DNA of 64,000 nucleotides from Glycera tridactyla (Eukaryota). The number at the start of each line of letters is the position of its first letter. Position 1 is the first letter of the stretch. A program made the translations under genes and the position numbers. The notes under the pieces were generated by a model. That model did not search any database. It was not told the DNA's origin and worked only from the letters and a program-made list of their open reading frames with translations. The stretch is taken from contig OZ286472.1 of the NCBI GenBank assembly GCA_965644265.1, forward strand, positions 44,950,001 to 45,014,000, read 5' to 3'. This document shows, in pieces, positions 1 through 62,487 of this stretch.

Positions 1-287
1 CCACTTACTGCGAGGGATTTTACTTTAAGGTTGTCAAAGAACATACTGAGTTCATCCTCGATGTCTAATCTGTTGATGTATGACATTAGATTGACCGCGT
101 GAGAGTCGCCGATAATTAACAGTTTAGGAGGGCCATACCTGCGAACAATTTCTATCGGTTGTTCTAGCCGATCTCTGCCGGGCGGTTGTACTCGTTCCTT
201 AGCCAGACGTTCGTCTTCTGAGTCAATCACCCGCGTAGTTGCTCTCACTCTGGTCACAGGGCGCCGGTAAATTGGGAGAAGACTCAT
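1..287 (-). CDS. 5' part of an SGNH/GDSL-hydrolase (esterase-like) ORF that runs off the window
   Basis: My translation from the ATG at 287-285 gives 95 codons with no stop: MSLLPIYRRPVTRVRATTRVIDSEDERLAKERVQPPGRDRLEQPIEIVRRYGPPKLLIIGDSHAVNLMSYINRLDIEDELSMFFDNLKVKSLAVS(G). LLIIGDSH (GDS at 110-102) fits SGNH block I and SLAVSG fits block II. The ATG overlaps the ORF1 TGA (286-284). Confidence 0.7.
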   Translation of the reverse strand, partial: MSLLPIYRRPVTRVRATTRVIDSEDERLAKERVQPPGRDRLEQPIEIVRRYGPPKLLIIGDSHAVNLMSYINRLDIEDELSMFFDNLKVKSLAVS

Positions 288-3250
288 CGCGAGTAATGAC
301 CACCACGTCCTCCACGTGATGAAGAAAGGTTCCCTTGTATAGGTCCTTGCGACGGTCTTTTGCGTGGGTCTTCAAATGAGCGCCTACTATTCCAATGTTG
401 ATAGGATTGTTGTTCACCGCTCGAATGTTGGCTGCCAGTAGTTGCAGTATCACGTGATCGATCACTCGCGTCACCATGGCCCTGCCAGGTGACTCTATCG
501 GAGTCCCTGCTCTGTGCGGCGGAAGGGTGGCGGACGTATGTAGCCACCAGTGTGTTCCGATAGCTCTCGCGCGTGCCCTCACGGCTGCAGTCGCGTCGTC
601 CACCACTTTTCCCGCGTCTGCCATCGTACATGCTTTCCCTCCTCTCCCTGCTTTGTGCGCGGTTTCTGTAATCTGTCTGGCCAGGATGCTGTTGTTGTAG
701 TTGTTGTTGTTGTTGTTGCTGACGTTGCTGATTTTGCTGTTTTTGTTTGTTATGGTTACCTGTTTGCCTCTGTTGTTGATGATCATGTTGTTGTTGTTGT
801 GGCCGTTGTTGTTGGTTGCTGCCTTGCTGTTGAAGTCGCTGCATATGTTGTGGTGGATCCAGACTGGCCTGATGCATATGTCCGGGGTGTTTTTGTTGTT
901 CCTCCTGATGTTGAACATGCAAGGTGGTCGCATGCTCACTCTGTTGATTTTGTGTCGCGTTGCGTTCGTGTTGCTGTTGTTCTCGTTGTGGTACTATGGG
1001 TTGTGCTTGCCCATCAGTGCTTCTGTTATCCCGGTGTCTGTTATACGCTACTTCATTAATTTGTCTGAGCTCATCCGGGTCGGTTAGTACTGCTGGTTTC
1101 GAATCTGGACTAGTCTGTGCCCACACCAGGCCGTCATATGTCCATACTTTGGATATGATGTTATGTTTCCTTGCTTGTCTGGCTTCATAGTAGACCCGAT
1201 TATTTTTCGTCGTCAGGAATTCTTTAAAGAACAGGCTTGACCCCCGCAATTGGCCCTTGCATTTCATCAAGTGCCTTTTAAGTTGTGTGTCCCTGAATTT
1301 AACAAGTATGGGTCTGATGCCTTGGTCATCTGCCTTCCCAAAGTATGTGCACTTTATCAAGTCCTGGGGTGTAATATCTAACTTGAGTCTCTCACGTAGC
1401 TCGTAGCCAACATTATCAAAGAGACTGAAATTCATGTTGATTTCCAGGCCTTCAATAATTAGCATGTTCATACGATCTGACAACTCTAGATTTTCAATGC
1501 GGGTTAGGATGCTAGGCGTAGTCTCCTGGCCCGTTTTATGTCCAGCTGCTGGCTGCTCGATGTTGGTCATCCCTGCTGGGGTGCTACTCAAGCGTTCTAG
1601 GTTGCTCCTGAGCATGTTGGTGATTTTGATATTTTCGTGTAACTCCTTATTCACTTTTCTTAATTGATTGGATAGATTCAGAATTTCTACACTCACTTCA
1701 TTCATGATGTCCTGCCGTATCTTTTTATGAAGGCTTTTTTCGATTTGGGCTGTCAGTTCTATCTCCAATCCAGGGCGAATGTCATTGGTGACCTCGTCCT
1801 TGAGTTTGTCCTTGACTGTGCTAGGGAGATTATTCCAAGTGATTTCTGGTGGTTCATTAGTCCGTGTATAGCTCGTTAACAGTAGATCTACATCATCACC
1901 CCATTCTTCGGGCGTTCTTCCAGGCTTGTCTTGTTTTTTGTTAGTACCATTATCAGCTTGTCCGGAAGTGATCTGTTCAATGCTCTCCAAATCCATCTCC
2001 AGCTCCATTTCCATATCCATCTTTGCTTCTGCATCACTGTCTTCACTCACTTCACTTCCATCCTCATCATCACTACCACTCTCACTAGGGCCAGAGGACG
2101 AGTGTTCGCCGCTCACCTCTTCATTAATATTCTCTGTCAGGCCATTACTCCTGCCCATATTTTTGCGGCCCTTTTTAGAGAAGACGCCCGACTGGGCTGG
2201 TAGGTCATCTGGAGATGACATGTTCCGGCGGCGTTTAGGCTTTTTGTTCCTACTAGGTAGTTTTGGAGCAATTAGAGGCTCTGAGGTAACCGTAGCCGTC
2301 ATCGCGGGATTATTGGCTAAATTTTTTGAGACGATTGAGTCTACTTCCTGCTTCATTCTATCATCGATAGCTTCCTTTCCCCCTCGACCTGCAGCCGGTC
2401 TCTCTTCCTGAATCTCTACATGAGGTCGTTCTTGTGCTCCATCCAGACTTGCAATTTGTTCAGTCTCTGATCCGGTGATCGTAGTATCACCTGTCAACGC
2501 AATGCTACCACCACTGGCCGTGCTGTTTGGTGGATCTGGTGCGGTCAATCCGGATGATGTGTGAGAGTGAGACATATCGTTAAGATCACTCAACAGGTTT
2601 TTAGCGGGGTTTTGTATAACCGAGTCACCTTCAGAGTCACTAAAACTCTCCCCAGCCCTGTCGGACAAATTCGCGTCTCTGTTGAATGCCTGACTCAGTG
2701 TACCCCTGACTGTGACATTAATTGCATTAGAGATAGCCTTGTTTGCCTTCATTGTTTGTGGCGAGTCCGCGACAGTAGCACTCGGCAAAGGGGCAGCGGC
2801 AGTATTTGCGGTTAAAGCAGTGGTTGGATGGTTTGGGCCTGGTTTGCGTTTAGACTGTGAATGGGGCGGAGGGGGAGGTGGGGGCGGCGTAAGCGGGTGT
2901 CTTAGCAGCGATTGTTTATAACGTCTACTCGGCGCGCCGACGGGTCCCCCACCCATGTCCGAGCTTGTACCATCGGCGCCGCTTGCTATAGAACGTGGCG
3001 ACTCACCTGGTGCTTCACCTGGGCTCGAGTCAACTGGTCGCTGGTTCGAAACCCCCTCCGTGACGTCAGTCGTTTGAACATGGCCACCCTCATTATCGTC
3101 CTTCTCAGCCCCCGGTTTACCTGTCTTTGCACGGCTCCACATCTTTACCAAGATGTTCTCGGGTCTCGTCTTCGGCACGCCTGGGTCGTCAGGATGTTCA
3201 TACATACGATCACCATTACGTTTTCCACCTAGGCTTCCTCTGGACGGCAT
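284..3250 (-). CDS. Non-LTR retrotransposon ORF1-like protein (988 aa; coiled coil plus L1/Tnp22-type RRM and CTD, low-complexity termini)
   Basis: Uninterrupted ATG-to-TGA ORF. A coiled-coil-like stretch (IEKSLHKKIRQDIMNEV...LRSNLERL) is followed by RIENLELSDRMNMLIIEGL, RPILVKFRD, LFFKEFLT and KVWTYDGLVWA, the motif order of L1/CR1-type ORF1 proteins. Gln-rich and RG-rich tail. Confidence 0.85.
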   Translation of the reverse strand: MPSRGSLGGKRNGDRMYEHPDDPGVPKTRPENILVKMWSRAKTGKPGAEKDDNEGGHVQTTDVTEGVSNQRPVDSSPGEAPGESPRSIASGADGTSSDMGGGPVGAPSRRYKQSLLRHPLTPPPPPPPPHSQSKRKPGPNHPTTALTANTAAAPLPSATVADSPQTMKANKAISNAINVTVRGTLSQAFNRDANLSDRAGESFSDSEGDSVIQNPAKNLLSDLNDMSHSHTSSGLTAPDPPNSTASGGSIALTGDTTITGSETEQIASLDGAQERPHVEIQEERPAAGRGGKEAIDDRMKQEVDSIVSKNLANNPAMTATVTSEPLIAPKLPSRNKKPKRRRNMSSPDDLPAQSGVFSKKGRKNMGRSNGLTENINEEVSGEHSSSGPSESGSDDEDGSEVSEDSDAEAKMDMEMELEMDLESIEQITSGQADNGTNKKQDKPGRTPEEWGDDVDLLLTSYTRTNEPPEITWNNLPSTVKDKLKDEVTNDIRPGLEIELTAQIEKSLHKKIRQDIMNEVSVEILNLSNQLRKVNKELHENIKITNMLRSNLERLSSTPAGMTNIEQPAAGHKTGQETTPSILTRIENLELSDRMNMLIIEGLEINMNFSLFDNVGYELRERLKLDITPQDLIKCTYFGKADDQGIRPILVKFRDTQLKRHLMKCKGQLRGSSLFFKEFLTTKNNRVYYEARQARKHNIISKVWTYDGLVWAQTSPDSKPAVLTDPDELRQINEVAYNRHRDNRSTDGQAQPIVPQREQQQHERNATQNQQSEHATTLHVQHQEEQQKHPGHMHQASLDPPQHMQRLQQQGSNQQQRPQQQQHDHQQQRQTGNHNKQKQQNQQRQQQQQQQLQQQHPGQTDYRNRAQSRERRESMYDGRRGKSGGRRDCSREGTRESYRNTLVATYVRHPSAAQSRDSDRVTWQGHGDASDRSRDTATTGSQHSSGEQQSYQHWNSRRSFEDPRKRPSQGPIQGNLSSSRGGRGGHYSR

Positions 3251-3331
3251 TACGACCGGTTTTTTGACACCTCGCGCGAATGCGTTACTCCTCCTTCATG
3301 TCCGTAGCATCGTGGCTGACACACGAATATC

Positions 3332-11590: not shown

Positions 11591-12449
11591 TATGAATAAA
11601 TCTTCTCATTGTTATGCCATTTAACTTATAGATCACTCCTGCCATCTTCAATACAAGATAGGACCAAGTGTCCAGGAGAATATCATGGAAACGAAATCGT
11701 TAAAGTGAGCCGTGACAAGAGTAAGCACGTCACTTTCGCTTTGTTTCGCCTAGTCCTTCAGGTCGGCACATTGGAAATTCACCATACCGACTCATCCTTG
11801 AAAGTCATGGTCAGAATCCAGGTCGTTGGAGACCCTGGTATTTTCCAATTATTCAAAACAAAACCCACCTCCTACTGTAGAAAGCATCCAGTCTATTTGC
11901 GTATATCATTTGGCAGCCCATTTGGAGCCGAAAAACACAAAGATGATAGATGCACCCATAAAATCTACCTCACAAATTTTTAAGGTGGTTGTTGGTGGAT
12001 AGAGTAACTATACCTCAGTTATCATATTACTAGCGGCATCTTCTCTTTTATTCTCAAAAATTATTACCATGTACAGCGAAAAGAAATCGTCTTTCACGCG
12101 CATCGCAAGATTAACCCATCTCATGTGAGAGACGGACACTGCTACCAACTAAATGTCAGCAAAGACATGTCATCCCAATCTAATGCTTACTTTTTTAGAA
12201 ATCTATGGTGGCATTCACTTAACAGCCTTTCGGGTTCCCCGTCATCATGTGTTTAGGATTCGTGAGAGTGATGTCTGCAGTGGAAAGAGCATCAAGCTTT
12301 CATTGACCAGAATCACACGCCATACATATTCCTCTGGGTTGATACATGCCGTTAAACGAAAAAAAAAAATCAATCGATCGCATATGGTGGGATAATCATA
12401 TTATTAGGTGGCAAAGAAATATTTAATTGTGACTTCCCCATGAGAGCCT

Positions 12450-14560
12450 ACATAAAGTTTCAATTCAATTCAAAAAGAAGTCTGATACCAGTTACAATAA
12501 TGATTCATCACCATCCTGAACTTGGATATATGTTGATGGGAGAGGCGTGTCATTTCGGCAGCTAAGCGACATAGACAACGGAGAAATTATCAGAAGGTGA
12601 TCAAAATCAAATTGACTCTTCATCTACCACCCATGTGGATTCCGTAATTATGTCTTCATTAATTGTTGGAGAATCCGCCCAACCCGCCCCAGCCGAATGC
12701 AGACATATTGCTGTAAGAGACATGGCGAGATTTGCCAGTGGCTGGTAGAATTCCCAATGAAAGGTGTGTATTGGACCAGTATGTTTGGGATAGTAGATTT
12801 CGATGTTGAGTATATCACCACATTCCCATGCATGGTATTTGGTCTCTTCCTGTGAGCCAAGAAATAAAGGAGAAAGACTGTAGGTGAACCGAATGAATGT
12901 GCCGTGGAAAACGAAAACAGGGACTCCTCGTGAAATAATGTGCATCATGATGCATCTGCGAGGTTTTGACTGTCGTTAAGAATATCAGCATGTTGGATAT
13001 AAAGCATGTGTATCTGAATGGTATCTGTGATATTGGTTGGCCCAGAGTTCGAATAGGGGAGTTTTCAAATAGTTGGTCGTTGCAGAAAGCCGAGGAGGTG
13101 TGTCGACGCATCCACTTTGCCTGATTGCGGTCCAGGCATCCCCATTTGAATAACAGGAATGACTCCTTGAGTGTCTGTGAAATTCATAAATTTTCACCTT
13201 CCGATGGGGACGCGGGGGGGGGGGAGAATTATCTCACCCATGTCCATTGCAAGGGCGTCACAGTTAAACCACAACTAACACACCGACCATCCCCATTTGA
13301 ACTAGTAGATGGATCAACTGCCGGGGGACTGGAAAATGTCTCACTTTCTAAATTGGAGTAGGCTTATCTATCCATCACTGTGTATACAGGTGAGTGATAC
13401 ATTGGTAATTAAGCACAGGTCCTTGACTTCTCCATATACATCTCACCTGTGAAGACAGCCATGAGAAGAACTTTTTCAGTAACCATTTCATGTCAAGCAG
13501 GTAAAAGGATTGCTATGAGCAGTAATTGGAAATGGCCCTGTTCTGTACTACATCCGGAAACCTTATCACTATTGAACTTCAGGAATCTACAGGGGGCATG
13601 ATGAAGTATTATCACAATACGTGGTATTGAGCAGGAATTTGCCCAAAGATTTCGATATCTTGAGGAATATGTCCATGGCGAAATTTCACTGATTTATATC
13701 AAGATGAGCCCTTCAGAATAGAGGGCAGGGACAATATTCTTTCAATCGCCTAACTGTCATTTGATGGAAAAGAGTCTAGGATTCGACGTGGTTTGCGAGA
13801 GGGCAACACGATATTGTTGTTCATGTTGAGGTAGTCTGGTCATTGGCACGAAAGGGTCGTTTTCATGCACTGTATGCTTCCGCACAAATATCTTTTGTGT
13901 GAGCAGGGTTTCATTACCTCCCATTCAACCATTTGCTTAGAGCAACTAATAAATATGTCCAAGTCAACCATATCTCACAATGCATATAATACAGAAATTT
14001 CGGGTAAACATCATGGAGATTTTCGAAATCTCAAGAAAACTACTTATCACTGCTTCGAATCCATGCAATTTGATCTTTCCCTGCCCGTGAGAAAACATGA
14101 TCAGTTCGATCAGAATTGGGATATCCCAGGACGATGTGCCCCTTTCCATGTTCTGAATCTGTTATTGTCCTGTATATAATTAAATCTCCTGCTATGATAA
14201 GTTTATGTAGGGGTCAGGATCCAATACCTGTAATGGATACATGAATCTATCTCCCTCTTCCGCACATTATGATACTTTCATACATATCCCTAGCTCATAT
14301 TGTGTTTCCAAATGGAATACTTCCTATAGCACCACTTTTAGAAACCTGAAATGAATCCAACACTCGCCCATATAGATGTACAATAACCTCTTCGGGAAAT
14401 AGATATTTTGTTTCTGATAATGACTTCGACGTGTTCTGTCCCTGAGCAGTATGGCCAGGTGATGATGATCTTAATCGTAATTCTTTGAGACTAGGTCATA
14501 CTCAGGTGAATGGTTTCACGAATGATCATCCCAATCAATAATGCACCTAGGTACCCAACA
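12450..14560 (-). mobile_element. Heavily decayed, internally deleted L1/Tx1-like LINE ORF2 relic
   Basis: Broken frames give KLIIAGDL and DRTDHVF (APE-like, about 14060-14190), VEWEVMK, and SPLFLGSQEETKYHAWEC (resembles the C-terminal C..C...ET..HLFW.C zinc motif, about 12820-12880). (TTGAA)n-like tail near 12460. No RT core found. Confidence 0.35.
13152..13280 (+). mobile_element. SINE-like family copy
   Basis: CCTTGAGTGTCTGTGAAATTCATAAAT...GGGCGTCACAGTTAAAC matches 26340-26513. Confidence 0.6.
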
Positions 14561-17500
14561 AACTCTGTCCATATGTCTGTGGTAAGCTAGAACTTTCATT
14601 CCTTTTTTCATACCGAGACGTTCAGAGTTGTCTGTTCGAGATCACATTGTGATCATTCATTCACGGTGGTGCTTGCTAATGGGGTGAGCACATAAACATA
14701 AGTGTATAAGGATTCCATTTTTTTAGCGCATTTTTCATCTGTTATTGGTTCATGAACAGATGAATTGTTGTTCTGGGCGACAGATCGTATGAGGTCGAAC
14801 ACAATGGGCGGTCTGTCACTGAAAAATAAATCTAGTCCCAAGGACCTTTTTTCTGTTTGGTGTAAACTTGTGTATTCTTTCAATCCATTATTACCTCGGA
14901 CTGGCTGTCCCAAAAAACTACTCGGGCAGAATGATCAGTTGGTGAGATTGGTTCTTATGAGGATCATAAAGACTACTCTGACGTGTGAGGTATCACGCTC
15001 CAAAAGGATTGTATTACAAAGATTGTCTTTGTTACGGATGTTCGTTGTAACAAACTGCCCCTACTCTGACTGGTATTCATACATGGAATATGATAATTAG
15101 GCTCAGTTGTGTTGGAGAACTTTGTTGGCATAATTGAAAGATTCTCAGCAAATTCTTCCCCACGAAACTACCCCTCGTGCGTGCAACACCTATAAAATCA
15201 AATCGAACTATACATGACTGCTACATGCATTGCTTTGAATGGTAGAATATAATGAATGACGATGTCTTCACAGCTCCATTGGCTTTCCGAGTCTATGCTA
15301 TTTGTGTTTGATATTCGCCCGAGAAAAAGACATCACTGCATCATCAGACAACTTTCTTCATTCCGCCTAAGAATGGTGTATGGACAGACAGACCCCCCCC
15401 CCCCCCATCCTTCCCATATCAGCAGTTACGACTAGCTCAGCTAGCTAAATGCTTGACCATACAAATGTATTGGTTTGGGCTCTCTGTGAAGAAAGCATTT
15501 CAAGCATCTCAATATGATGTGGCCCAAGCTATCATTACAGACACAAAGTCAACTTGGCCCTTCCACACTTCAGATCGGAATATGATTCACTCGACATTGT
15601 CTATGAAAGTCAAGTTTGATCGTTCAAAAAGTGGCCTTTATAGGCAGGTGGCCTTTGTAGAGAGGTTATTTACTGTTGAATATACCATACCCTGCCCGTG
15701 AGAAACCATTGGTAATTAAGCACAGGTCCTTGACTTCTCCATATACATCTCACCTGTGAAGACAGCCATGAGAAGAACTTTTTCAGTAACCATTTCATGT
15801 CAAGCAGGTAAAAGGATTGCTATGAGCAGTAATTGGAAATGGCCCTGTTCTGTACTACATCCGGAAACCTTATCACTATTGAACTTCAGGAATCTACAGG
15901 GGGCATGATGAAGTATTATCACAATACGTGGTATTGAGCAGGAATTTGCCCAAAGATTTCGATATCTTGAGGAATATGTCCATGGCGAAATTTCACTGAT
16001 TTATATCAAGATGAGCCCTTCAGAATAGAGGGCAGGGACAATATTCTTTCAATCGCCTAACTGTCATTTGATGGAAAAGAGTCTAGGATTCGACGTGGTT
16101 TGCGAGAGGGCAACACGATATTGGTGTTCATGTTGAGGTAGTCTGGTCATTGGCACGAAAGGGTCGTTTTCATGCACTGTATGCTTCCGCACAAATATCT
16201 TTTGTGTGAGCAGGGTTTCATTACCTCCCATTCAACCATTTGCTTAGAGCAACTAATAAATATGTCCAAGTCAACCATATCTCACAATGCATATAATACA
16301 GAAATTTCGGGTAAACATCATGGAGATTTTCGAAATCTCAAGAAAACTACTTATCACTGCTTCGAATCCATGCAATTTGATCTTTCCCTGCCCGTGAGAA
16401 AACATGATCAGTTCGATCAGAATTGGGATATCCCAGGACGATGTGCCCCTTTCCATGTTCTGAATCTGTTATTGTCCTGTATATAATTAAATCTCTTGCT
16501 ATGATAAGTTTATGTAGGGGTCAGGATCCAATACCTGTAATGGATACATGAATCTATCTCCCTCTTCCGCACATTATGATACTTTCATACATATCCCTAG
16601 CTCATATTGTGTTTCCAAATGGAATACTTCCTATAGCACCACTTTTAGAAACCTGAAATGAATCCAACACTCGCCCATATAGATGTACAATAACCTCTTC
16701 GGGAAATAGATATTTTGTTTCTGATAATGACTTCGACGTGTTCTGTCCCTGAGCAGTATGGCCAGGTGATGATGATCTTAATCGTAATTCTTTGAGACTA
16801 GGTCATACTCAGGTGAATGGTTTCACGAATGATCATCCCAATCAATAATGCACCTAGGTACCCAACAAACTCTGTCCATATGTCTGTGGTAAGCTAGAAC
16901 TTTCATTCCTTTTTTCATACCGAGACGTTCAGAGTTGTCTGTTCGAGATCACATTGTGATCATTCATTCACGGTGGTGCTTGCTAATGGGGTGAGCACAT
17001 AAACATAAGTGTATAAGGATTCCAGTTTTATAGCGCATTTTTCATCTGTTATTGGTTCATGAACAGATGAATTGTTGTTCTGGGCGACAGATCGTATGAG
17101 GTCGAACACAATGGGCGGTCTGTCACTGAAAAATAAATCTAGTCCCAAGGACCTTTTTTCTGTTTGGTGTAAACTTGTGTATTCTTTCAATCCATTATTA
17201 CCTCGGACTGGCTGTCCCAAAAAACTACTCGGGCAGAATGATCAGTTGGTGAGATTGGTTCTTATGAGGATCATAAAGACTACTCTGACGTGTGAGGTAT
17301 CACGCTCCAAAAGGATTGTATTACAAAGATTGTCTTTGTTACGGATGTTCGTTGTAACAAACTGCCCCTACTCTGACTGGTATTCATACATGGAATATGA
17401 TAATTAGGCTCAGTTGTGTTGGAGAACTTTGTTGGCATAATTGAAAGATTCTCAGCAAATTCTTCCCCACGAAACTACCCCTCGTGCGTGCAACACCTAT

Positions 17501-20305
17501 AAAATCAAATCGAACTATACATGACTGCTACATGCATTGCTTTGAATGGTAGAATATAATGAATGACGATGTCTTCACAGCTCCATTGGCTTTCCGAGTC
17601 TATGCTATTTGTGTTTGATATTCGCCCGAGAAAAAGACATCACTGCATCATCAGACAACTTTCTTCATTCCGCCTAAGAATGGTGTATGGACAGACAGAC
17701 CCCCCCCCCCCCCCCCATCCTTCCCATATCAGCAGTTACGACTAGCTCAGCTAGCTAAATGCTTGACCATACAAATGTATTGGTTTGGGCTCTCTGTGAA
17801 GAAAGCATTTCAAGCATCTCAATATGATGTGGCCCAAGCTATCATTACAGACACAAAGTCAACTTGGCCCTTCCACACTTCAGATCGGAATATGATTCAC
17901 TCGACATTGTCTATGAAAGTCAAGTTTGATCGTTCAAAAAGTGGCCTTTATAGGCAGGTGGCCTTTGTAGAGAGGTTATTTACTGTTGAATATACCATAC
18001 CCTGCCCGTGAGAAACCATTGGTAATTAAGCACAGGTCCTTGACTTCTCCATATACATCTCACCTGTGAAGACAGCCATGAGAAGAACTTTTTCAGTAAC
18101 CATTTCATGTCAAGCAGGTAAAAGGATTGCTATGAGCAGTAATTGGAAATGGCCCTGTTCTGTACTACATCCGGAAACCTTATCACTATTGAACTTCAGG
18201 AATCTACAGGGGGCATGATGAAGTATTATCACAATACGTGGTATTGAGCAGGAATTTGCCCAAAGATTTCGATATCTTGAGGAATATGTCCATGGCGAAA
18301 TTTCACTGATTTATATCAAGATGAGCCCTTCAGAATAGAGGGCAGGGACAATATTCTTTCAATCGCCTAACTGTCATTTGATGGAAAAGAGTCTAGGATT
18401 CGACGTGGTTTGCGAGAGGGCAACACGATATTGGTGTTCATGTTGAGGTAGTCTGGTCATTGGCACGAAAGGGTCGTTTTCATGCACTGTATGCTTCCGC
18501 ACAAATATCTTTTGTGTGAGCAGGGTTTCATTACCTCCCATTCAACCATTTGCTTAGAGCAACTAATAAATATGTCCAAGTCAACCATATCTCACAATGC
18601 ATATAATACAGAAATTTCGGGTAAACATCATGGAGATTTTCGAAATCTCAAGAAAACTACTTATCACTGCTTCGAATCCATGCAATTTGATCTTTCCCTG
18701 CCCGTGAGAAAACATGATCAGTTCGATCAGAATTGGGATATCCCAGGACGATGTGCCCCTTTCCATGTTCTGAATCTGTTATTGTCCTGTATATAATTAA
18801 ATCTCTTGCTATGATAAGTTTATGTAGGGGTCAGGATCCAATACCTGTAATGGATACATGAATCTATCTCCCTCTTCCGCACATTATGATACTTTCATAC
18901 ATATCCCTAGCTCATATTGTGTTTCCAAATGGAATACTTCCTATAGCACCACTTTTAGAAACCTGAAATGAATCCAACACTCGCCCATATAGATGTACAA
19001 TAACCTCTTCGGGAAATAGATATTTTGTTTCTGATAATGACTTCGACGTGTTCTGTCCCTGAGCAGTATGGCCAGGTGATGATGATCTTAATCGTAATTC
19101 TTTGAGACTAGGTCATACTCAGGTGAATGGTTTCACGAATGATCATCCCAATCAATAATGCACCTAGGTACCCAACAAACTCTGTCCATATGTCTGTGGT
19201 AAGCTAGAACTTTCATTCCTTTTTTCATACCGAGACGTTCAGAGTTGTCTGTTCGAGATCACATTGTGATCATTCATTCACGGTGGTGCTTGCTAATGGG
19301 GTGAGCACATAAACATAAGTGTATAAGGATTCCAGTTTTATAGCGCATTTTTCATCTGTTATTGGTTCATGAACAGATGAATTGTTGTTCTGGGCGACAG
19401 ATCGTATGAGGTCGAACACAATGGGCGGTCTGTCACTGAAAAATAAATCTAGTCCCAAGGACCTTTTTTCTGTTTGGTGTAAACTTGTGTATTCTTTCAA
19501 TCCATTATTACCTCGGACTGGCTGTCCCAAAAAACTACTCGGGCAGAATGATCAGTTGGTGAGATTGGTTCTTATGAGGATCATAAAGACTACTCTGACG
19601 TGTGAGGTATCACGCTCCAAAAGGATTGTATTACAAAGATTGTCTTTGTTACGGATGTTCGTTGTAACAAACTGCCCCTACTCTGACTGGTATTCATACA
19701 TGGAATATGATAATTAGGCTCAGTTGTGTTGGAGAACTTTGTTGGCATAATTGAAAGATTCTCAGCAAATTCTTCCCCACGAAACTACCCCTCGTGCGTG
19801 CAACACCTATAAAATCAAATCGAACTATACATGACTGCTACATGCATTGCTTTGAATGGTAGAATATAATGAATGACGATGTCTTCACAGCTCCATTGGC
19901 TTTCCGAGTCTATGCTATTTGTGTTTGATATTCGCCCGAGAAAAAGACATCACTGCATCATCAGACAACTTTCTTCATTCCGCCTAAGAATGGTGTATGG
20001 ACAGACAGACCCCCCCCCCCCCCATCCTTCCCATATCAGCAGTTACGACTAGCTCAGCTAGCTAAATGCTTGACCATACAAATGTATTGGTTTGGGCTCT
20101 CTGTGAAGAAAGCATTTCAAGCATCTCAATATGATGTGGCCCAAGCTATCATTACAGACACAAAGTCAACTTGGCCCTTCCACACTTCAGATCGGAATAT
20201 GATTCACTCGACATTGTCTATGAAAGTCAAGTTTGATCGTTCAAAAAGTGGCCTTTATAGGCAGGTGGCCTTTGTAGAGAGGTTATTTACTGTTGAATAT
20301 ACCAT
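13400..20305. repeat. Tandem triplication of a 2.29-kb segment
   Basis: Units 13400-15688, 15707-17998 and 18017-20305 are near identical and separated by the same 18-nt insert (15689-15706, 17999-18016). Identical ORFs recur three times in the ORF track. Confidence 0.97.
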
Positions 20306-26921: not shown

Positions 26922-27167
26922 NNNNNNNNNNNNNNNNNNNNNNNNNNNNNNNNNNNNNNNNNNNNNNNNNNNNNNNNNNNNNNNNNNNNNNNNNNNNNNN
27001 NNNNNNNNNNNNNNNNNNNNNNNNNNNNNNNNNNNNNNNNNNNNNNNNNNNNNNNNNNNNNNNNNNNNNNNNNNNNNNNNNNNNNNNNNNNNNNNNNNNN
27101 NNNNNNNNNNNNNNNNNNNNNNNNNNNNNNNNNNNNNNNNNNNNNNNNNNNNNNNNNNNNNNNNNNN
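26922..27167. other. Assembly gap (N run)
   Basis: 246 N. Confidence 1.
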
Positions 27168-44290: not shown

Positions 44291-44457
44291 NNNNNNNNNN
44301 NNNNNNNNNNNNNNNNNNNNNNNNNNNNNNNNNNNNNNNNNNNNNNNNNNNNNNNNNNNNNNNNNNNNNNNNNNNNNNNNNNNNNNNNNNNNNNNNNNNN
44401 NNNNNNNNNNNNNNNNNNNNNNNNNNNNNNNNNNNNNNNNNNNNNNNNNNNNNNNNN
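44291..44457. other. Assembly gap (N run)
   Basis: 167 N. Confidence 1.
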
Positions 44458-53513: not shown

Positions 53514-54227
53514 CTAATGGGTTAACCCAGCTGCCTGGCGGAAAGCACTCAGGACCCCTAATGGCTTCAGCACATTCTTTTTTATCTTCTCCATACGCTC
53601 TATAACAACACGATTCTCAGCATCAATGTCCAAACCTGACGCATCCTCAATCTCCTTTGCTTTGAGAAAGCCTCTGCGGATAGCCTCCACAACATATATC
53701 TGCTCACCGGTCACGTTGTTTATATAAGTCCCTGTTTCCTTATCAATGAGGCCCCTTTTAACAGCTTCATAGAATGGCACTTTCTTTTTCAGTCTCTGAT
53801 CAACAACGGCATTTACAGCGTATATTTTCGTATCAAAATCCGGTAAAACAGGCTCAGGCTCGTATTCGACCAGCACCCAGCCATGTTGGATAGCGTCATC
53901 TAGTGGGAATTTCTCCCCTGTGAGTGAGTTTGTAAATTGAGCCTCCTCCTCGTTAATGAGTCCTTTCTCTCGAGCTTCCTCAGGTGATAGTTGTTCACCC
54001 GTACGTGGGTCGACGACACCCGTGATGTGATAATGTCGGCTGTCCATACTTGTTTTAATGGTGATCAGGCCAATCGCTTTCAATTCCTCTCTCGTTTTGG
54101 TCGTCGTTGTTTGCTCGACAAGGATCTTGCCAGTATTCATGGCTTCCGGAATCGGGATAGCCTCACCAGTGACGAGGTTCACGTAGGTACCATGTTCCTG
54201 ATCAACAATTCCTTCGGAGATAGCAGC
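53514..54227 (-). CDS. Terminal exon encoding plectin (plakin) repeats
   Basis: Acceptor TTTTTATTTGTCCGCAG|GCT, phase 0. AAISEGIVDQEHGTYVNLVTGEAIPIPEAM..., GVVDPRTGEQLSPEEAREKGLIN... and AVVDQRLKKKVPFYEAVKRGLIDKETGTYINNVTGEQI... are plectin-repeat motifs. Stop at 53516-53514. Confidence 0.92.
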   Translation of the reverse strand, partial: AAISEGIVDQEHGTYVNLVTGEAIPIPEAMNTGKILVEQTTTTKTREELKAIGLITIKTSMDSRHYHITGVVDPRTGEQLSPEEAREKGLINEEEAQFTNSLTGEKFPLDDAIQHGWVLVEYEPEPVLPDFDTKIYAVNAVVDQRLKKKVPFYEAVKRGLIDKETGTYINNVTGEQIYVVEAIRRGFLKAKEIEDASGLDIDAENRVVIERMEKIKKNVLKPLGVLSAFRQAAGLTH

Positions 54228-54850
54228 CTGCGGACAAATAAAAACAACTATGAGGAACTATACTGAAGTTTGGCGTGGTGATATGTGATCTCCTTAGATC
54301 GTTAGATAGAGTATGGGTGATACGAGCTACGGATTGAAAGATCATCACCTAATTTCAGCGAATGCGGATTCCGATCTGATGTCTAATATACATTGTTTAG
54401 TGATTATCTGAAGTGTATGTAGCGTCGGAATACTACACTTCGATTGATAAAGATGCATGAAGTGGGGTTGGGGTCAGAATAGACACTGGTTTGGTTGTTT
54501 TGGTGAACAATCCCTCGGTTTGCCAGAAAAAAACAATTGATTCCCACGATTATCATCTGTATATTCTCTGTTATGACAGTCTCACTCCATATGCTATTTT
54601 CCATGGGGTATGAGGGTCCCACTACCAATCCCAATTCAATTTAGCCTTCGGGGTAATAAGCCGAGGGTCATGCAGTTCCATAGCAGTATAATCCATCGAG
54701 AAGCTCTGATGACTGAATAAAGTCCCTCATGGACTCCTATGGGGAATTTGACCTCCTGAATTCCGCAGTAGTGCCGCACTTCCAGTATATACTAATGAGT
54801 CTTTGATTAATTGATTTTGCAACGGATGTACATAGCATGAGACACTCTAC

Positions 54851-55082
54851 CTGTATACTGATTTCTTTGTTGGTTCTCGGATCGATGACACAGCGGATGA
54901 CGAAACGTCGGCGTTCCTCTGAGCTAGCTGACGTTATCTGGTCTGCTTCCACTGTCTCGTTCTTGTAGCCAGAGCCATACTCCGAGCAACTTTCTGTACG
55001 CTCCTTCTGTTCTGATGGCGGGATCTCTGTTATCTCCTCCCGGGTCTCCGTCTCCTCCATGGTCATCTTCATCTCGAAATAC
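54851..55082 (-). CDS. Internal exon B of the plectin-repeat gene
   Basis: Branch point CTAAC plus acceptor ...GATACAG|G TAT TTC (phase 2); donor CAG|GTAGAG (phase 0). Ends FVIRCVIDPRTNKEISIQ, which joins AAISEG to complete a plectin repeat. Confidence 0.88.
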
Positions 55083-57638
55083 CTGTATCGCAATAAACAG
55101 GAGTTAGTGACGCAGGACTACCACTTACACGAGAAGAATGAATAGCAAAAATTCATATGATGAGATAAATCTGAAAGCTGGAATAAACTTACAACGATTG
55201 TGACGTCGCAGCTAGAATCTCCAGCCTTCGACTGGATGACTCAAAACATTTATCATTATGTGAATAGCAAAAATTGTTTCAAAAGAGACTCAAAGGAAAC
55301 ATTCATAGGCACATACTTTTCCCAGAGATATACATACTTAGATGCCTTCTTTGATAAGGAAATTGTGCTTCATTTTTCCTATACACACGGCGAATTAACA
55401 ACATAATATATGTCATTCCCGTCTTACTTTTGAAAGTGAAACATTGAATAGAACTGTAGTGTTTCAACCGTGATATCAAGTGGGGATTAGGGAATTATAC
55501 TGAAGTGTCTATCATCGACAAAGCGACTGAAATTAGGTATGATATTTCAAAGAAAAAATAAGATAAGTTGCAGACATGATGATTCGAATATCCATCATAT
55601 AAGATATGAGTATCTACAACACCGACAGCCGCTCAATTATATAGAAACACTCATGTGATCTCATTGTCCATTACGTGAACACAAATCAAATCGGATTGAC
55701 ATACATCATGCAACACCCGCAAACAATTTACATACTGTCAAGCAAGGCCACACCATGGCATGCGACTCCTGCAAAACACAAACTACAGTGCGGACAGGGC
55801 CTCTTAACTATACATCGAACGACCACATTCGAAACAAAATATAAGCGACGGACAAATGAGCCTCAATTGATGAAAAATACAATCAGGGATGAAAGTTACT
55901 ATAGTGAAAAAATATCTGAAATCAGTCTCCGTCCCAAAATTTTGATTATGATCAAAATATCTGAAAATGTGGGCTATTGAAGCCAAATATCTGAATCCAG
56001 ATAATCATCTGAAAACTTCCATCCCTGTAAAATCCAGGCAGGTGAAATAATGTTTTTGGAGGAACACAGCATCATCATATTCGATAGGATCATACACTGT
56101 ACTAGACAAATGCACTAGACGAAAAAAAAGAGAAAAAACATTTCCTATACTGGATGTAAAGACATATCAATACACTAGAAGGCGAGAGTTGCAATCGAAT
56201 GATCATCAATTTTCAATTATCAAGTGTGATTTATCGTTGTTGGCCATCATTGTTCTATCCAGGAATATGCAAATATACGATCACACCAATCCAGATATCT
56301 TCCCGAGAGTACACTCAACCACCCAGGCTCCATGAACTATCAGCGTTCATACCTTCACTGTGAAATGTGATAGATAGGAACAGCAAGTGACATGACAGCT
56401 GAGAAGATTTAGATCTGTGTGATCCATCTCTTTCAATGCAAGCTCGATTTTGTAAGCTAGATTTCATATTTATGGAGTAAATGGAGGACATTGTGGATTC
56501 TACGGATGTATATTTTGGACATATTACATTGGAAGCTTGCTGAAACCCATAGGATCACGTGAGACTGATACAATAGTCATAGAGTGTCTCTCCAAGATGA
56601 CTTTCAAAGCAAAATTTCTGTTGATCAGGTTAGTATTATTTGTCCAGATTTAATTGTGACAGCCTAGAATGGTTGGCTGATGGTGGGCAAAGCAAATGGC
56701 ACAAGTTTGTATTGCCTCTGATGGAGCTATGGTCAAGACGACTGACAAGCCGTTAATGCAAACAGGACACTTTGAGACTTGGGGTATTTTCTCTTCTCTG
56801 CCTTCCATTTGTACTTGTATTCAGGCAAATACTCATTTGGCAGTCCCAAACTAAACGGCGTGATGGGAGAAAATGTTATATCCACGACACACATGCCAAA
56901 CACGAGACGATTATTGACCATCTGGTTGCGGTGATGTTTTTTTCACCAAAATGATTTATTCTGGGGACACAGACTGACTATTCAGTGAGAGCCACGTGAA
57001 TTCTGTTATAGATATGACAGTGCCAGGAATGCAATCCATATCGATAAGCTCTTTTCATTCACAAACAAGTTTTCATGAAGTTTTGTCCATAAACATATTC
57101 ATCAGTTGTACCAGCTTGGATTACAGAAGTGCGTGGGAGCTTCCAAGACCCTCTTGCTGCCCAAGAACCCATCAGTGACTTGTCTGATGAGCCCTCCTTC
57201 ATTCACAGTGCTTGGAATGAGCAGGATGTGCCCAAGAATGTATCACTTCGATTGCAAGATTGTATATGATATCAGAATTTATGATTAGCTTATGATGCGA
57301 TGTCATGTAAGGTAACAATGTCTCAAATCACTCCCATATGTAACCATCATTATGTGATATGGTATTTCTGGTACCCAATGTGATTTGTCGGCCTTGCAAG
57401 CTTTCTCCGATCATCTCCATAGTTAGGGTAAAGAGATGATTATCACAACTATAGTTGATAGTACCTAAATTCATTAGCCGATATTCTTACTGACATTCGT
57501 CAGTCCACTGTCTGACAAAATGTCTTTCAATGTATGCACCACACAGCAACACGGCATGATTTGTATTAATGACATCAGTAGGAACAAACAATAATATAGT
57601 ATTAGAACACACATTGAAAATGTTAGCTGGTTACTTGC

Positions 57639-59127
57639 TCACTTCTTGCAAGCTTGGTTAATAGAAAACCGGGCACATTGCTCAACAATGTAAATAGCAT
57701 ACTCTGAAGATGATCCTTCTTCTTTCTGGACGGTATCTCCGGATGCTGAGCATGAGATCATTTCACCTTCACCAGCTGATCCCTCCATCTCCTGCCCACC
57801 AATCCGTCGCCAACTTTCACCATAGCCAGATGATGAATAATCCTCTATAAGTTCTCCTTGTTGTTGTAGTTGTTGCTGTTGCATTTCTTGTTGACTTTTA
57901 GTGTAAATCACACCTTCGCCATATGATGAATATCCTTCAGAGTACTGATTTTGTTCCTCTTGCTGTTCCGTCTGCTGTTGTCGCATCCCCTGTGAATAAA
58001 TAACGCCTTCACCATATGAAGAATAATCTTCAGAGTATTGGTTTTGTTCCTGTTGCTGTTCTGTCTGTTGTTGTCGCACCCCCTGTGAATAGATAACGCC
58101 TTCACCATATGGAGAGTAATCTTCAGAATATTGATTCTGTTCTTGTGTCTGTTGCTGCTGCTGTTGCCCTTGAGTGTATATGACCCCCTCACCATAAGAA
58201 GAATAGTCCTCAATCAGTTCACCTTGTTGCTGTTTCGTTTGTTCTTTCTTCCCTTGAGTGTGAATAACACCTTCCCCATACGACGAATAATCTTCGATCA
58301 GTTCGCCAGATACATTTTGTTGTGACTCTTGTTGTTGCTGTTGGCCCTGAGTGTAAATTACACCTTCCCCATACGATGAGTAATCCTCTATCAATTCACC
58401 GGGTTGCTTTTGCTGTTGTTGTTGCTGCCGCTCTTGCTCTCTCTGAACCTTAGAATAAATGACACCCTCGCCATATGAGGAGTAGTCTTCGGTTAATTCT
58501 CCAGGTTGCTTTTGTTGCTCTTCTGTAGTGTGTGTGCCTTGTGTATATATGACTCCTTCACCATATGAGGAGTAGTCTTCGGTTAATTCTCCAGGTTGCT
58601 TTTGTTGCTCTTCTGTAGTGCGTGTGCCTTGTGTATATATGACTCCTTCACCATATGAGGAGTAGTCTTCGGTTAATTCTCCAGGTTGCTTTTGTTGCTC
58701 TTCTGTAGTGCGTGTGCCTTGTGTATATATGACTCCTTCACCATATGAGGAGTGATCTTCTTCTATTTGTTGTTGTCCAGGGGTGCGACCGTAGACAACC
58801 CCCTCTCCTGTCGAGTAATATTCTTCCACAAGTTTGCCAGGTCCTCGTCCAGCTACAGGGCCTACCGATTTCCTTTCACCTTGCTCTTCGGACGAGTACT
58901 CAACGCCATATCCTGAGGAAGAATACTCCTCGATCAGCCTATCACCGAAACCCTGTTTCTTCTGTCTACCATCTACAACATCTGTCGTAGTTGTAATGAT
59001 TTCTGTAACTTCGTCTCTCTTTTCCTTCTCAATGGCCTCACGATCAGGAGGTGCAGGGAGAGGGAGTATCTTGGTGATCTCCTCTCGTATTTCAGTCTCG
59101 ATCATGTGCATGCGCAGCTCCAAGTAT
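57639..59127 (-). CDS. Large exon A with ten YGEGVI(Y/H) Tyr/Gln-rich repeats (alternative terminal or internal exon)
   Basis: Acceptor TTAATTCACCAG|A TAC TTG (phase 2); about 495 open codons. It ends at TGA 57641-57639, which overlaps a possible phase-2 donor AA|GTGAGC. Confidence 0.85.
58480..58750 (-). repeat. 90-bp coding tandem repeat (30 aa, three near-identical copies)
   Basis: CCAGGTTGCT recurs at 58501, 58591 and 58681. Confidence 0.95.
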
Positions 59128-61229
59128 CTGGTGAATTAAGTATAAAAAATTTGTGGGTGTCCTTTGATACGATGGATCGAAAAATTATACATTGCATAAA
59201 AAAAAGACCATCATGAGAGTGGGAAAGAGAAGTACATGATAAATGCGTACCTATAATAGAAAATGTGATATATGAGGGGGGGGGGGGAAGTAATCGATGT
59301 GCCCAAGATCTACTGAGACAGAGTGAACCATCCACTTGAAAAAATATCATATGTATACCAATGACAACGAGAAGGTTTTCACGATAGGTTGTTTACCCAT
59401 TAGAGAGATGGCTTTCATATTCTCGAAAGCCTGCCCAAGAATTGAAACACTGACACAATTGTCCTTAACATACCATGATCTATCATCCATATTTATCTCC
59501 ATGAATCGTTTTAGTTATATTATCTAGCAGCCTGCAAGGAGCAGGCCTCAACTTTTTGAAATATCAGGACCTTTCATACCACATACCATCGGAACACCAT
59601 GCCTGTACATATTTAGGTGTTATGGGAATGACCTAACAAGTATTTCAGAATGTGGTCCTGTGCTTCCCCTATCATACTTGTATCACAACGAAAAGACCCT
59701 CAGCTGACATGCTGAGATTACGATAATGTACTACTATCTCAATATATCTGTATTCCCACCCTGGGTCATACTGCAAAAATTGAGTATCAGCCAACCATCT
59801 TCACAGGATATCGAACAGGGAATACCTACGTTGCAGAAAACATGTCGTATAGCTAATGGTACATGAGGAAGTCCATAAACATTCATAAGAAAGACTTCAT
59901 TAATATTCATCAAAAACTGACTAGATGGCATTCATAATCATTTGATATATGTCACAATTTTCTAGGACACGATATCAGCTACAGGGAATCTTCCGAACAT
60001 CTAGTGAGATTCGATGAACAGAAAATGATGTATATTTCAACATTACCTACAGGAGACACATCACGACAATTAGACACAACATCGATAGCGTGCATATTTG
60101 TTCCTAGAAAAAGGTCATTGTAATTTTAGGCTATTCGCTGAAATATGGTACTGCTTTCGTATCTCCATAGTCAGATACGAACGAAACAGGAAATGATCGA
60201 TTTATTGGTGAGGTATAGACATGCAGTTGAAAGGTTTCACCGAATACTCACTGTTCCCAACTGGGTGCACCATAAATGAAATGCAGATTACCCATCAAAC
60301 ATATCGATTCACTTATTTCTAATTGTCACACTTCTTGGCGGAATGAAGCCCGTTGGGCCATGGGATATTCAAGACAAAAAAGCACCTGGATAGTTTCTGC
60401 GGTGGTCAGCCTAGGTATGTCAATCTGATGAATATGATCTCAGGAATGAAGCATCTGATGTTGTAGTGAGTTGGGGGGGGGGGGGGGTCTTCTCGGTATT
60501 CCATGATTACGGATTGGTGAACAGTGCTCCGGCCCGGGTGGGTGACAGATATACCATTCATCCAATACAGGACAGCACCACATGCAAGGAGCATCTCTGG
60601 CTAGAGGTAATTGAGCGTGACCTCAATCCACTAAAACTTTGCCGGAGCTCTGTATCGCTGGAAAACGTCCCGCATGAGTGCTCAAACTATGCAGGCAACC
60701 CCATCTTCTGGTGTGCATTGTCCCCGAGTATCCGGGAAAGCTACAAACGTGTACACAGTTGCCAAGAAATGGAATCAGTGAAGAGGCCCAACTTGGTCAG
60801 GATATTGGATATTCAGTTCTCTATCACGGAGTGGATTTGTTTATTGCTCGATCGGGAAATAATATTCAAGTCAACAAATATTACTATCCATGTTTGGGTT
60901 CAGGGCACACTTTCCGGCTGTGAATTTGGGACCAATGCTGGTCCACTTGAATTACCCCTTATGCTATAGACACGTGAATGAGACACAACCACACTCATCG
61001 TAGCTGTTGCTTCTTTGTGAAAAATAAGGAAATAATCTACATTAGCACCTGTTTAACACAGAAAGTATCATATCCAGGATCAAGTGTACAAGTATGTTCA
61101 TTTTCAATTTTCTCCGAAACCTGGAATAGATCCGACGTCTGATATATCAAAGAATGGTGGCTGATCTATTTCCACTTGGATTACTGGGTGATATTAGCCA
61201 TTTGGATTTTATCGTGTTGATATTCTCAC

Positions 61230-61345
61230 CTGACTATTCGTCCCTTTCGATAGGGTACGATCTGTTCCCAGTGATCAACTATACGGATGGGACGAGATGT
61301 CTTCTCCATGTTACGTTGGAATAAGTGCAGCTGCTTCGAGAACAT
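61230..61345 (-). CDS. Internal exon of the same gene (MFSKQLHLFQRNMEKTSRPIRIVDHWEQIVPYRKGRIV)
   Basis: Acceptor CTGTCTTTTTCTCAG|, donor CAG|GTGAGA; 116 nt, phase 0 to phase 2. The terminal AG completes Arg with either exon A (A) or exon B (G). Not in the ORF track. Confidence 0.82.
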
Positions 61346-61492: not shown

Positions 61493-61922
61493 GCATGGGA
61501 GCCTTGATTGTTTCACAGTAATCAGGGAAGGTCATGGGAGCCTTGATTGTTTCACAGTAATCAGGGAAGGTCATGGGAGCCTTGATTATTTCACAGTAAT
61601 CAGGGAAGGTCATGGGAGCCTTGATTGTTTCACAGTGATCAGGGGATGTCATGGGAGCCTTGATTGTTTCACAGTAATCAGGGAAGGTCATGGGAGCCTT
61701 GATTGTTTCACAGTAATCAGGGAAGGTCATGGGAGCCTTGATTATTTCACAGTAATCAGGGAAGGTCATGGGAGGCTTGGTTGTTTCACAGTAATCATGG
61801 AATGTCATGGGAGCCTTGATTGTTCCACAGTCATCAGGGAAGGTCATTGGAGGCTTGGTTGTTTCACAGTAATCATGGAATGTCATGGGAGCTTTGATTG
61901 GTTCACAGTTATCATGGAAGGT
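61493..61922. repeat. 39-bp intronic minisatellite, about 11 copies
   Basis: Unit CATGGGAGCCTTGATTGTTTCACAGTAATCAGGGAAGGT, with variant units at the right end. Confidence 0.95.
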
Positions 61923-62428: not shown

Positions 62429-62487
62429 CTGATAGCAGAGTACAGTCTTGTCCAGTGACGCAATGATGTCCACGAGGTCCCCAACCT
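62429..62487 (-). CDS. Internal exon of the same gene (xVGDLVDIIASLDKTVLCYQ)
   Basis: Acceptor ATTTCTTCCAATGCAG|, donor CAG|GTATGT; 59 nt, phase 1 to phase 0, in frame with the 61345 exon. Not in the ORF track. Confidence 0.78.

Follow-up and report, generated by a model that had tools for sequence, protein, structure and literature searches.

The window analysed here is a stretch of 64,000 nucleotides (nt) from Glycera tridactyla (contig OZ286472.1, positions 44,950,001 to 45,014,000), and its minus strand carries the downstream exons of a plakin gene, called W, X, A, B and C in the order of transcription; all coordinates are those of the window (Table 1). We read exon A, which opens with a second copy of the short motif that opens exon B, as a frame-preserving cassette exon of a small plakin that would lack a rod, with a probability of about 0.7. 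Exon A is certainly included in transcripts, and there is thin evidence that it is sometimes skipped. A reading of the same DNA made from its letters alone (the sequence-only reading) had proposed a switch between two C-termini at this place; that switch is not supported, as both observed forms carry the same plectin-repeat tail. The gene model is corrected accordingly: the donor of exon A lies at 57703, the stop codon attributed to this exon is intronic, and the plectin tail is present in both isoforms.

Splicing around exon A

The joints were read from contigs of four public runs belonging to two studies (X1, X2 and X3 in one, X5 in the other) and bearing two organism labels. The runs contain 20-24% of the words of 53517-59127, and their contigs were aligned over 53750-59400. 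The contigs lack introns and their joints are canonical, which points to an origin in spliced RNA. Exon B is joined to exon C (54851 to 54227) in all four runs. The joint from A to B (57703 to 55082, CT..AC on the plus strand, that is GT..AG on the minus strand) is likewise present in four of four, and in X2 and X5 one contig spans A through B into C. Exon X ends in ...GTCAG/GTGAG at 61230 (the slash marks the splice site), in phase 2 with two codon bases left over, and its last 27-30 nt occur as loose ends joined to A in three runs and to B in one. The first kind, seen in X2, X3 and X5, is a loose end at 59130 that reads as the reverse complement of the final letters of exon X; one contig of X5 reaches 1088 nt upstream of A. 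The second is a loose end of 27 nt at 55085, identical letter for letter to the end of exon X and found in X3 alone, which joins X to B with A skipped. Furthermore, in X1 and X3, where the A-to-B junction contig enters B by no more than 26+4 nt, the exon B contig ends precisely at 55082. A break at this position is the pattern of de Bruijn-graph assembly where two predecessors meet, and the break in X1 is thus a second run implying the skipping of A.

The codon phases agree with these joints. The acceptor of A, cag/A at 59127, gives AGA (Arg) followed by YLELRMHMIETEIREEITKILP, and that of B, cag/G at 55082, gives AGG (Arg) followed by YFEMKMTMEETETREEITEIPP, which bears out the earlier statement that both acceptors are in phase 2 and complete the Arg codon begun at the 61230 donor. 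The donor in use, TCAGA/GTATGC, is 60 nt upstream of the one proposed at 57643 and is also in phase 2 (GA + G gives Glu, then YFEMKM...). Among three junctions predicted from the letters, 61230-59127 is present in three runs and 61230-55082 in one, and 57643-55082 is replaced by 57703-55082 in all four. As in a cassette exon, inclusion junctions are found on both sides of A, a skipping junction is found with thin support, and the length of 1425 nt is divisible by three. From X onward, X-A-B-C has 828 residues and X-B-C has 353, both open to the stop at 53516-53514.

Several points weigh against this reading. The skipping of A is represented by one 27-nt junction contig in one run and by the contig break in a second, and X2 and X5 show the A-containing path only. 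No run is recorded as RNA, so that their RNA nature is a guess, though introns are absent and the joints are canonical, and isoform ratios, tissues and transcript ends cannot be read from contigs. As regards the protein, the N-terminal exons lie beyond the window (past 64000), and the overall architecture is deduced from homologues whose alignment covers W, X, B and C; the AlphaFold model of one homologue (P0048) gives the motif a low-confidence strand (predicted local distance difference test, pLDDT, 40-54). The strongest competing explanation, which we regard as unlikely, is that exon A is constitutive, with X-A-B-C as the sole real messenger RNA and the X-to-B joint as splicing noise or an assembly artefact. 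The unbranched contigs that run from A through B to C in X2 and X5 would suit it, and so would the fact that the X-to-B evidence is a single loose end in X3. However, this loose end reproduces the end of exon X without a mismatch and sits right at the B acceptor, the stop of the B contig in X1 and X3 together with the short reach of the junction contig shows the second-predecessor pattern, and skipping of a symmetric exon of this length is harmless to the frame.

A second alternative takes A as an alternative terminal exon, read through to the stop at 57641 and polyadenylated, yielding a Tyr/Gln-tailed protein without plectin repeats that would switch with the plectin-tailed form. The frame does stay open for 20 codons beyond 57703, to the stop 57641-57639, and there is an AATAAA near 56960. 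The contigs speak against this option, and we consider it improbable. In each of the four runs, depth is zero over 57530-57698 and in the bins of 56207-57151; over 57152-57529 it does not exceed 1.1 (in X3 only), compared with an exon depth of 50-140. The bin 57530-57718 has depths of 6.9, 8.3, 10.9 and 15.0, which equal the contribution of 57699-57718 alone at the contig depth of each run; 57530-57698 is therefore uncovered in all of them. All contigs reaching the end of A go on into B, and transcripts running through its own stop to a poly(A) site are absent from the contigs of the four runs, although contigs can miss rare forms. Given the lack of coverage past the donor, the stop and the AATAAA are intronic in all contigs seen. 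The overlap between the stop and a phase-2 donor described earlier does exist as letters (with the GT at 57642), but splicing takes place at 57703. Likewise, of the three products that had been envisaged, X-A-B-C occurs in all four runs and X-B-C in one or more, but X-A-stop has zero depth past 57702. Finally, use of A and B as mutually exclusive exons, the classic outcome of tandem exon duplication, would agree with their common acceptor phase and homologous start, but the 57703 to 55082 joint, which places both in the same contig in four of four runs, refutes it.

The duplicated exon start and the content of exon A

Exons A and B open with clearly related peptides (RYLELRMHMIETEIREEIT and RYFEMKMTMEETETREEIT), as the sequence-only reading had noticed. 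Their BLOSUM62 local score is 70, against 30-36 (standard deviation 5.6) in shuffled sequences, and none of 2000 shuffles reaches 70. At the DNA level the similarity starts exactly at the acceptor CAG and extends over approximately 63 nt with about 65% identity. In the first 22 codons, a small sample, the proportion of synonymous differences (pS) is 0.83, which is saturated, and that of nonsynonymous differences (pN) is 0.23; the saturated pS combined with a low pN suggests that the duplication is old and that both copies are constrained at the protein level. The resemblance does not extend further. An EY(S/G)SGY-like motif had been described later in both exons, and the strings are present (EEYSSSGYG in A, SEYGSGY in B), but their scores of 27-28 against a shuffle mean of 24 are reached by 20-27% of shuffles. 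Similarity between the middle or end of A and the remainder of B is not above chance.

The motif is single in all 13 homologues where the motif pattern was found, and in each of the related loci L001, L002 and L003; it is double only in the window, at both exon starts. This supports the exon duplication proposed earlier. Which copy came first can be judged from the relatives. Homologues align to exons B and C and not to exon A, and spliced joints are seen on both sides of B. Locus L001, with 64% identity over its 144-residue called product (corresponding to the second half of exon C), has a 116-nt counterpart of exon X that ends in CAG/GT in the identical phase, and a microsatellite intron of 549 nt precedes its motif exon, without A. 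In Capitella the intron at the site of A has about 370 nt, and B and C form one exon. The alignment of homologues to B and the short intron at the site of A in both L001 and Capitella indicate that the intron is old and A a lineage-specific insertion into it. These comparisons support B as the putative parent copy and A as an old, partial exon duplication.

After the motif, exon A encodes a Lys/Glu-rich stretch and then 13 units of E(D/E)YSSYGEGVIY with Gln-rich spacers. Its composition is 16.5% Q, 15% E, 12% G, 10% S and 8% Y, and it is a Tyr/Gln/Gly-rich repeat and not a heptad coiled coil. The DNA contains 90-93-nt tandem arrays, in one of which the copies are 96% identical. Compared with the window, the contigs carry 9 inserted nt at 57858, which encode further Gln-rich residues, and they lack 180 nt (two 90-nt units) at 58470-58651; either repeat-length polymorphism or assembly collapse would explain both differences. 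The 180-nt gap was rejected as a splicing event because of its 60 ambiguous letters and a strand that does not suit an intron; collapse of the 90-nt array, or a difference in the number of its copies, is the preferred reading. Word-index protein searches with exon A (the whole exon, and residues 1-135 to avoid poly-Gln) gave no relative among proteins of 261-830 residues, longer proteins being outside their scope, and the whole-exon search was probably swamped by Gln-rich words.

Taken together, the cassette reading suggests the following history. The ancestral gene would have had a conserved intron just before the conserved motif RY[FY]E.K.T..ETxEE. Long ago the 5' end of the motif exon B, with its acceptor and phase, would have been copied into this preceding intron, and the copy would then have been enlarged to its present length by internal tandem amplification. 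In the observed splicing, X (61230) goes to A (59127), A (57703) to B (55082) and B to C, with some transcripts going from X to B directly. The two products share the single C-terminal plakin repeat domain and differ by a segment of 475 residues, rich in Tyr, Gln, Glu and Gly and probably disordered, with its own copy of the motif. The putative function of exon A would be to set the length and character of the spacer between a plakin-type N-terminal module and a filament-binding domain, and the choice may be used in regulation. Because A begins with a motif copy, each isoform has the motif after X and also ahead of the repeat domain; because the expansion has an exon of its own, it is optional. 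A more speculative extension, which we think rather doubtful, is that the duplicated motif is a functional docking element. The 13-unit SYG/Gln-rich spacer could then be inserted or removed and might self-associate, tuning the grip on intermediate filaments through distance from the anchor or through collectivity. Other Tyr-rich low-complexity domains self-associate. If true, this would amount to an evolutionary recipe for the optional expansion of a linker.

The protein family and its surroundings in the window

Exon C encodes a plakin repeat domain, with a match to Pfam Plectin (PF00681) at E 1.5e-22 and 79.5 bits (cut-off 20.5) and to desmoplakin 5dzz at E 2.2e-6 and 30.8 bits. An exhaustive search of a representative library with exon C gave 750 relatives; giant plakins are among them, and a separate set consists of proteins of 240-1000 residues that match once, at their C-terminus, with 40-64% identity. 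The named members of this set are uncharacterised proteins of Owenia fusiformis (CAH1781428), Lineus longissimus (LOC135494697), Mya arenaria (LOC128220597) and Capitella teleta (CAPTEDRAFT_213826); identity of exon C to the first three is 41-47%. The family comprises small, rod-less plakins of annelids, molluscs and nemerteans, named only as 'uncharacterised'. Upstream, full-length homologues have a desmoplakin-type SH3 (SH3_10, PF17902; E 1e-10 to 3e-21), which in plakins is embedded among the spectrin-like repeats of the N-terminal plakin domain; spectrin matches there are weak, and a rod is absent. A central coiled-coil rod like that of desmoplakin, envoplakin, periplakin and plectin is seen neither in the window nor in the homologues; a repeat domain built of plectin repeats, another feature of the plakin family, is provided by exon C.

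In the alignment, W and X match the helix before the motif; the motif itself, a short acidic/Ser linker and the repeat domain's first strand correspond to B. Exon W was matched by tblastn with homologue P0033 and aligns to 'VASLDKAVLCYQ' of the homologues. In both window and homologues, the motif comes within about 25 residues of the W-X helix, and the repeat domain within about 75 residues of the same helix. In the AlphaFold model of P0048, the W-X helix and the repeat domain are both predicted with confidence. In P0054 (Owenia) and P0056 (an ENA protein), several hundred residues of linker repeats follow the motif within the B-like exon, and the linker after the motif thus appears, from these sequences, to be a site of expansion in the family. 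A family-profile search returned only 12 proteins, none from the species of the window, and hence no annotated isoforms; the isoform pairs of Lineus and Owenia differ at the N-terminus or by a micro-exon of 12 residues, not at the linker.

Two observations concern relatives of the gene. Two products of Logan transcript contigs from another species, P0158 and P0159, begin with about 20 residues that resemble translated intron (pyrimidine-tract-like) immediately before RYFELKLT; apart from this start, P0159 does not differ from the full-length P0154. Intron retention may explain this, or else an internal promoter that yields a form with just the repeat domain. In locus L001, a further gene that encodes one plakin repeat domain (11801-12562, minus strand) lies tail-to-tail with the first at a distance of about 1.4 kilobases (kb). 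A tail-to-tail second plakin-repeat gene of this kind had no match in the window by tblastn.

Table 1. Exons, introns and repeated elements of the plakin gene in the window
Feature	Position	Strand	Description
Exon W (predicted, upstream)	62429..62487	-	59 nt; ..VGDLVDIIASLDKTVLCYQ; AG acceptor and GT donor visible
Exon X	61230..61345	-	116 nt; MFSKQLHLFQRNMEKTSRPIRIVDHWEQIVPYRKGRIV plus AG of the Arg codon; donor 61230 common to A and B
Intron X-A	59128..61229	-	Bounded by X donor and A acceptor; X-to-A junction contigs in X2, X3, X5
Exon A as used	57703..59127	-	1425 nt, 475 codons, phase 2 at both ends; translation open throughout
Motif copy 1 (YLELRMHMIETEIREEITKILP)	59061..59126	-	Duplicated motif at the start of exon A
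13 repeat units in exon A	57792..58931	-	E(D/E)YSSYGEGVIY with Gln-rich spacers; 90-93-nt DNA tandem arrays
'Tail' of A in the sequence-only reading	57639..57702	-	Stop 57641-57639, GT at 57642; intronic in all contigs seen
Intron A-B	55083..57702	-	2620 nt; dispersed repeat ~55829-56017, AATAAA near 56960; 2620-nt skip in four runs
Exon B	54851..55082	-	232 nt; motif copy 2 (YFEMKMTMEETETREEITEIPP), short acidic/Ser linker, start of plakin repeat domain
Exon C	53514..54227	-	Plakin repeat domain to stop TAG 53516-53514; joint 54851 to 54227 in four runs

Two introns contain repeats. In intron W-X, at 61494-61922, a 39-nt unit is repeated 11 times with 91% matches and one open frame (PMTFPDYCETIKA...). 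It was considered as coding and rejected: homologues fail to align there, its Pfam matches look like artefacts of the repeat, and it is treated as an intronic minisatellite. In intron A-B, the short dispersed repeat at 55829-56017 has a summed contig depth of 700-800, from 19-29 different contigs per run in X1-X3 and six in X5, and is probably a transcribed fragment of a mobile element present in many copies. Elsewhere in the window, a tandem unit of 2.3 kb is present at about 13100-20300 in at least three copies with 99-100% identity, spaced by 2307 and 2310 and with the same small open reading frames in each. An uninterrupted open frame of 1003 codons (287-3295, minus strand), without a Pfam match above threshold, lies 50 kb downstream of the plakin gene and is probably a large exon of another gene. 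Runs of N occupy 26922-27167 and 44291-44457.

Comparison with known systems

The alternative use of a duplicated exon is a known kind of event, found here in small plakins that form an unstudied family. Alternative exons that arose by tandem exon duplication were reportedly described by Kondrashov and Koonin in 2001 and by Letunic, Copley and Bork in 2002. Exon A resembles them in being a neighbouring copy with the same acceptor phase, homologous sequence and alternative use. In contrast, only about the first 20 codons are recognisably duplicated here, the copy has grown approximately sixfold by internal repeats, and exon A, a cassette, occurs together with its parent, in series and not in mutual exclusion. 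It is thus a clear example of a partially duplicated exon that has been expanded by repeats and serves as an optional spacer. Its value lies in annotation and as a case of linker evolution, and it opens no long-standing question.

Among the spectraplakins (VAB-10A/B, Drosophila Shot, BPAG1/MACF1; PMC3352950), VAB-10A of C. elegans has a plakin repeat domain at its end, and in VAB-10B the 3' region differs (PMC3352950). As in these, the gene is of plakin type and splicing decides the neighbour of the plakin repeats. Unlike these, it shows no alternative 3' region in the present data; both isoforms keep the repeat domain, and a low-complexity spacer is added or removed. The proteins of the family are also small, at about 650-1000 residues, and the homologues seen have no spectrin rod, GAR or CH domains.

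Envoplakin has a plakin domain, a rod and one plakin repeat domain that binds intermediate filaments (PMC4782060), and by analogy with it and with the spectraplakins (PMC3352950) the repeat domain here would be expected to bind intermediate filaments. Both have a single C-terminal plakin repeat domain, and the homologues have the desmoplakin-type SH3 upstream. In contrast to envoplakin, a short acidic linker and the conserved strand-like motif take the place of a coiled-coil rod, and the similarity is limited to the plectin repeats. The closest counterparts are the proteins of Capitella, Owenia, Lineus and Mya, which share the order of helix, motif, short linker and plakin repeat domain, with an intron just before the motif in Capitella. 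They differ in having one copy of the motif and no A-like exon, and in Owenia the linker is long and lies within the exon.

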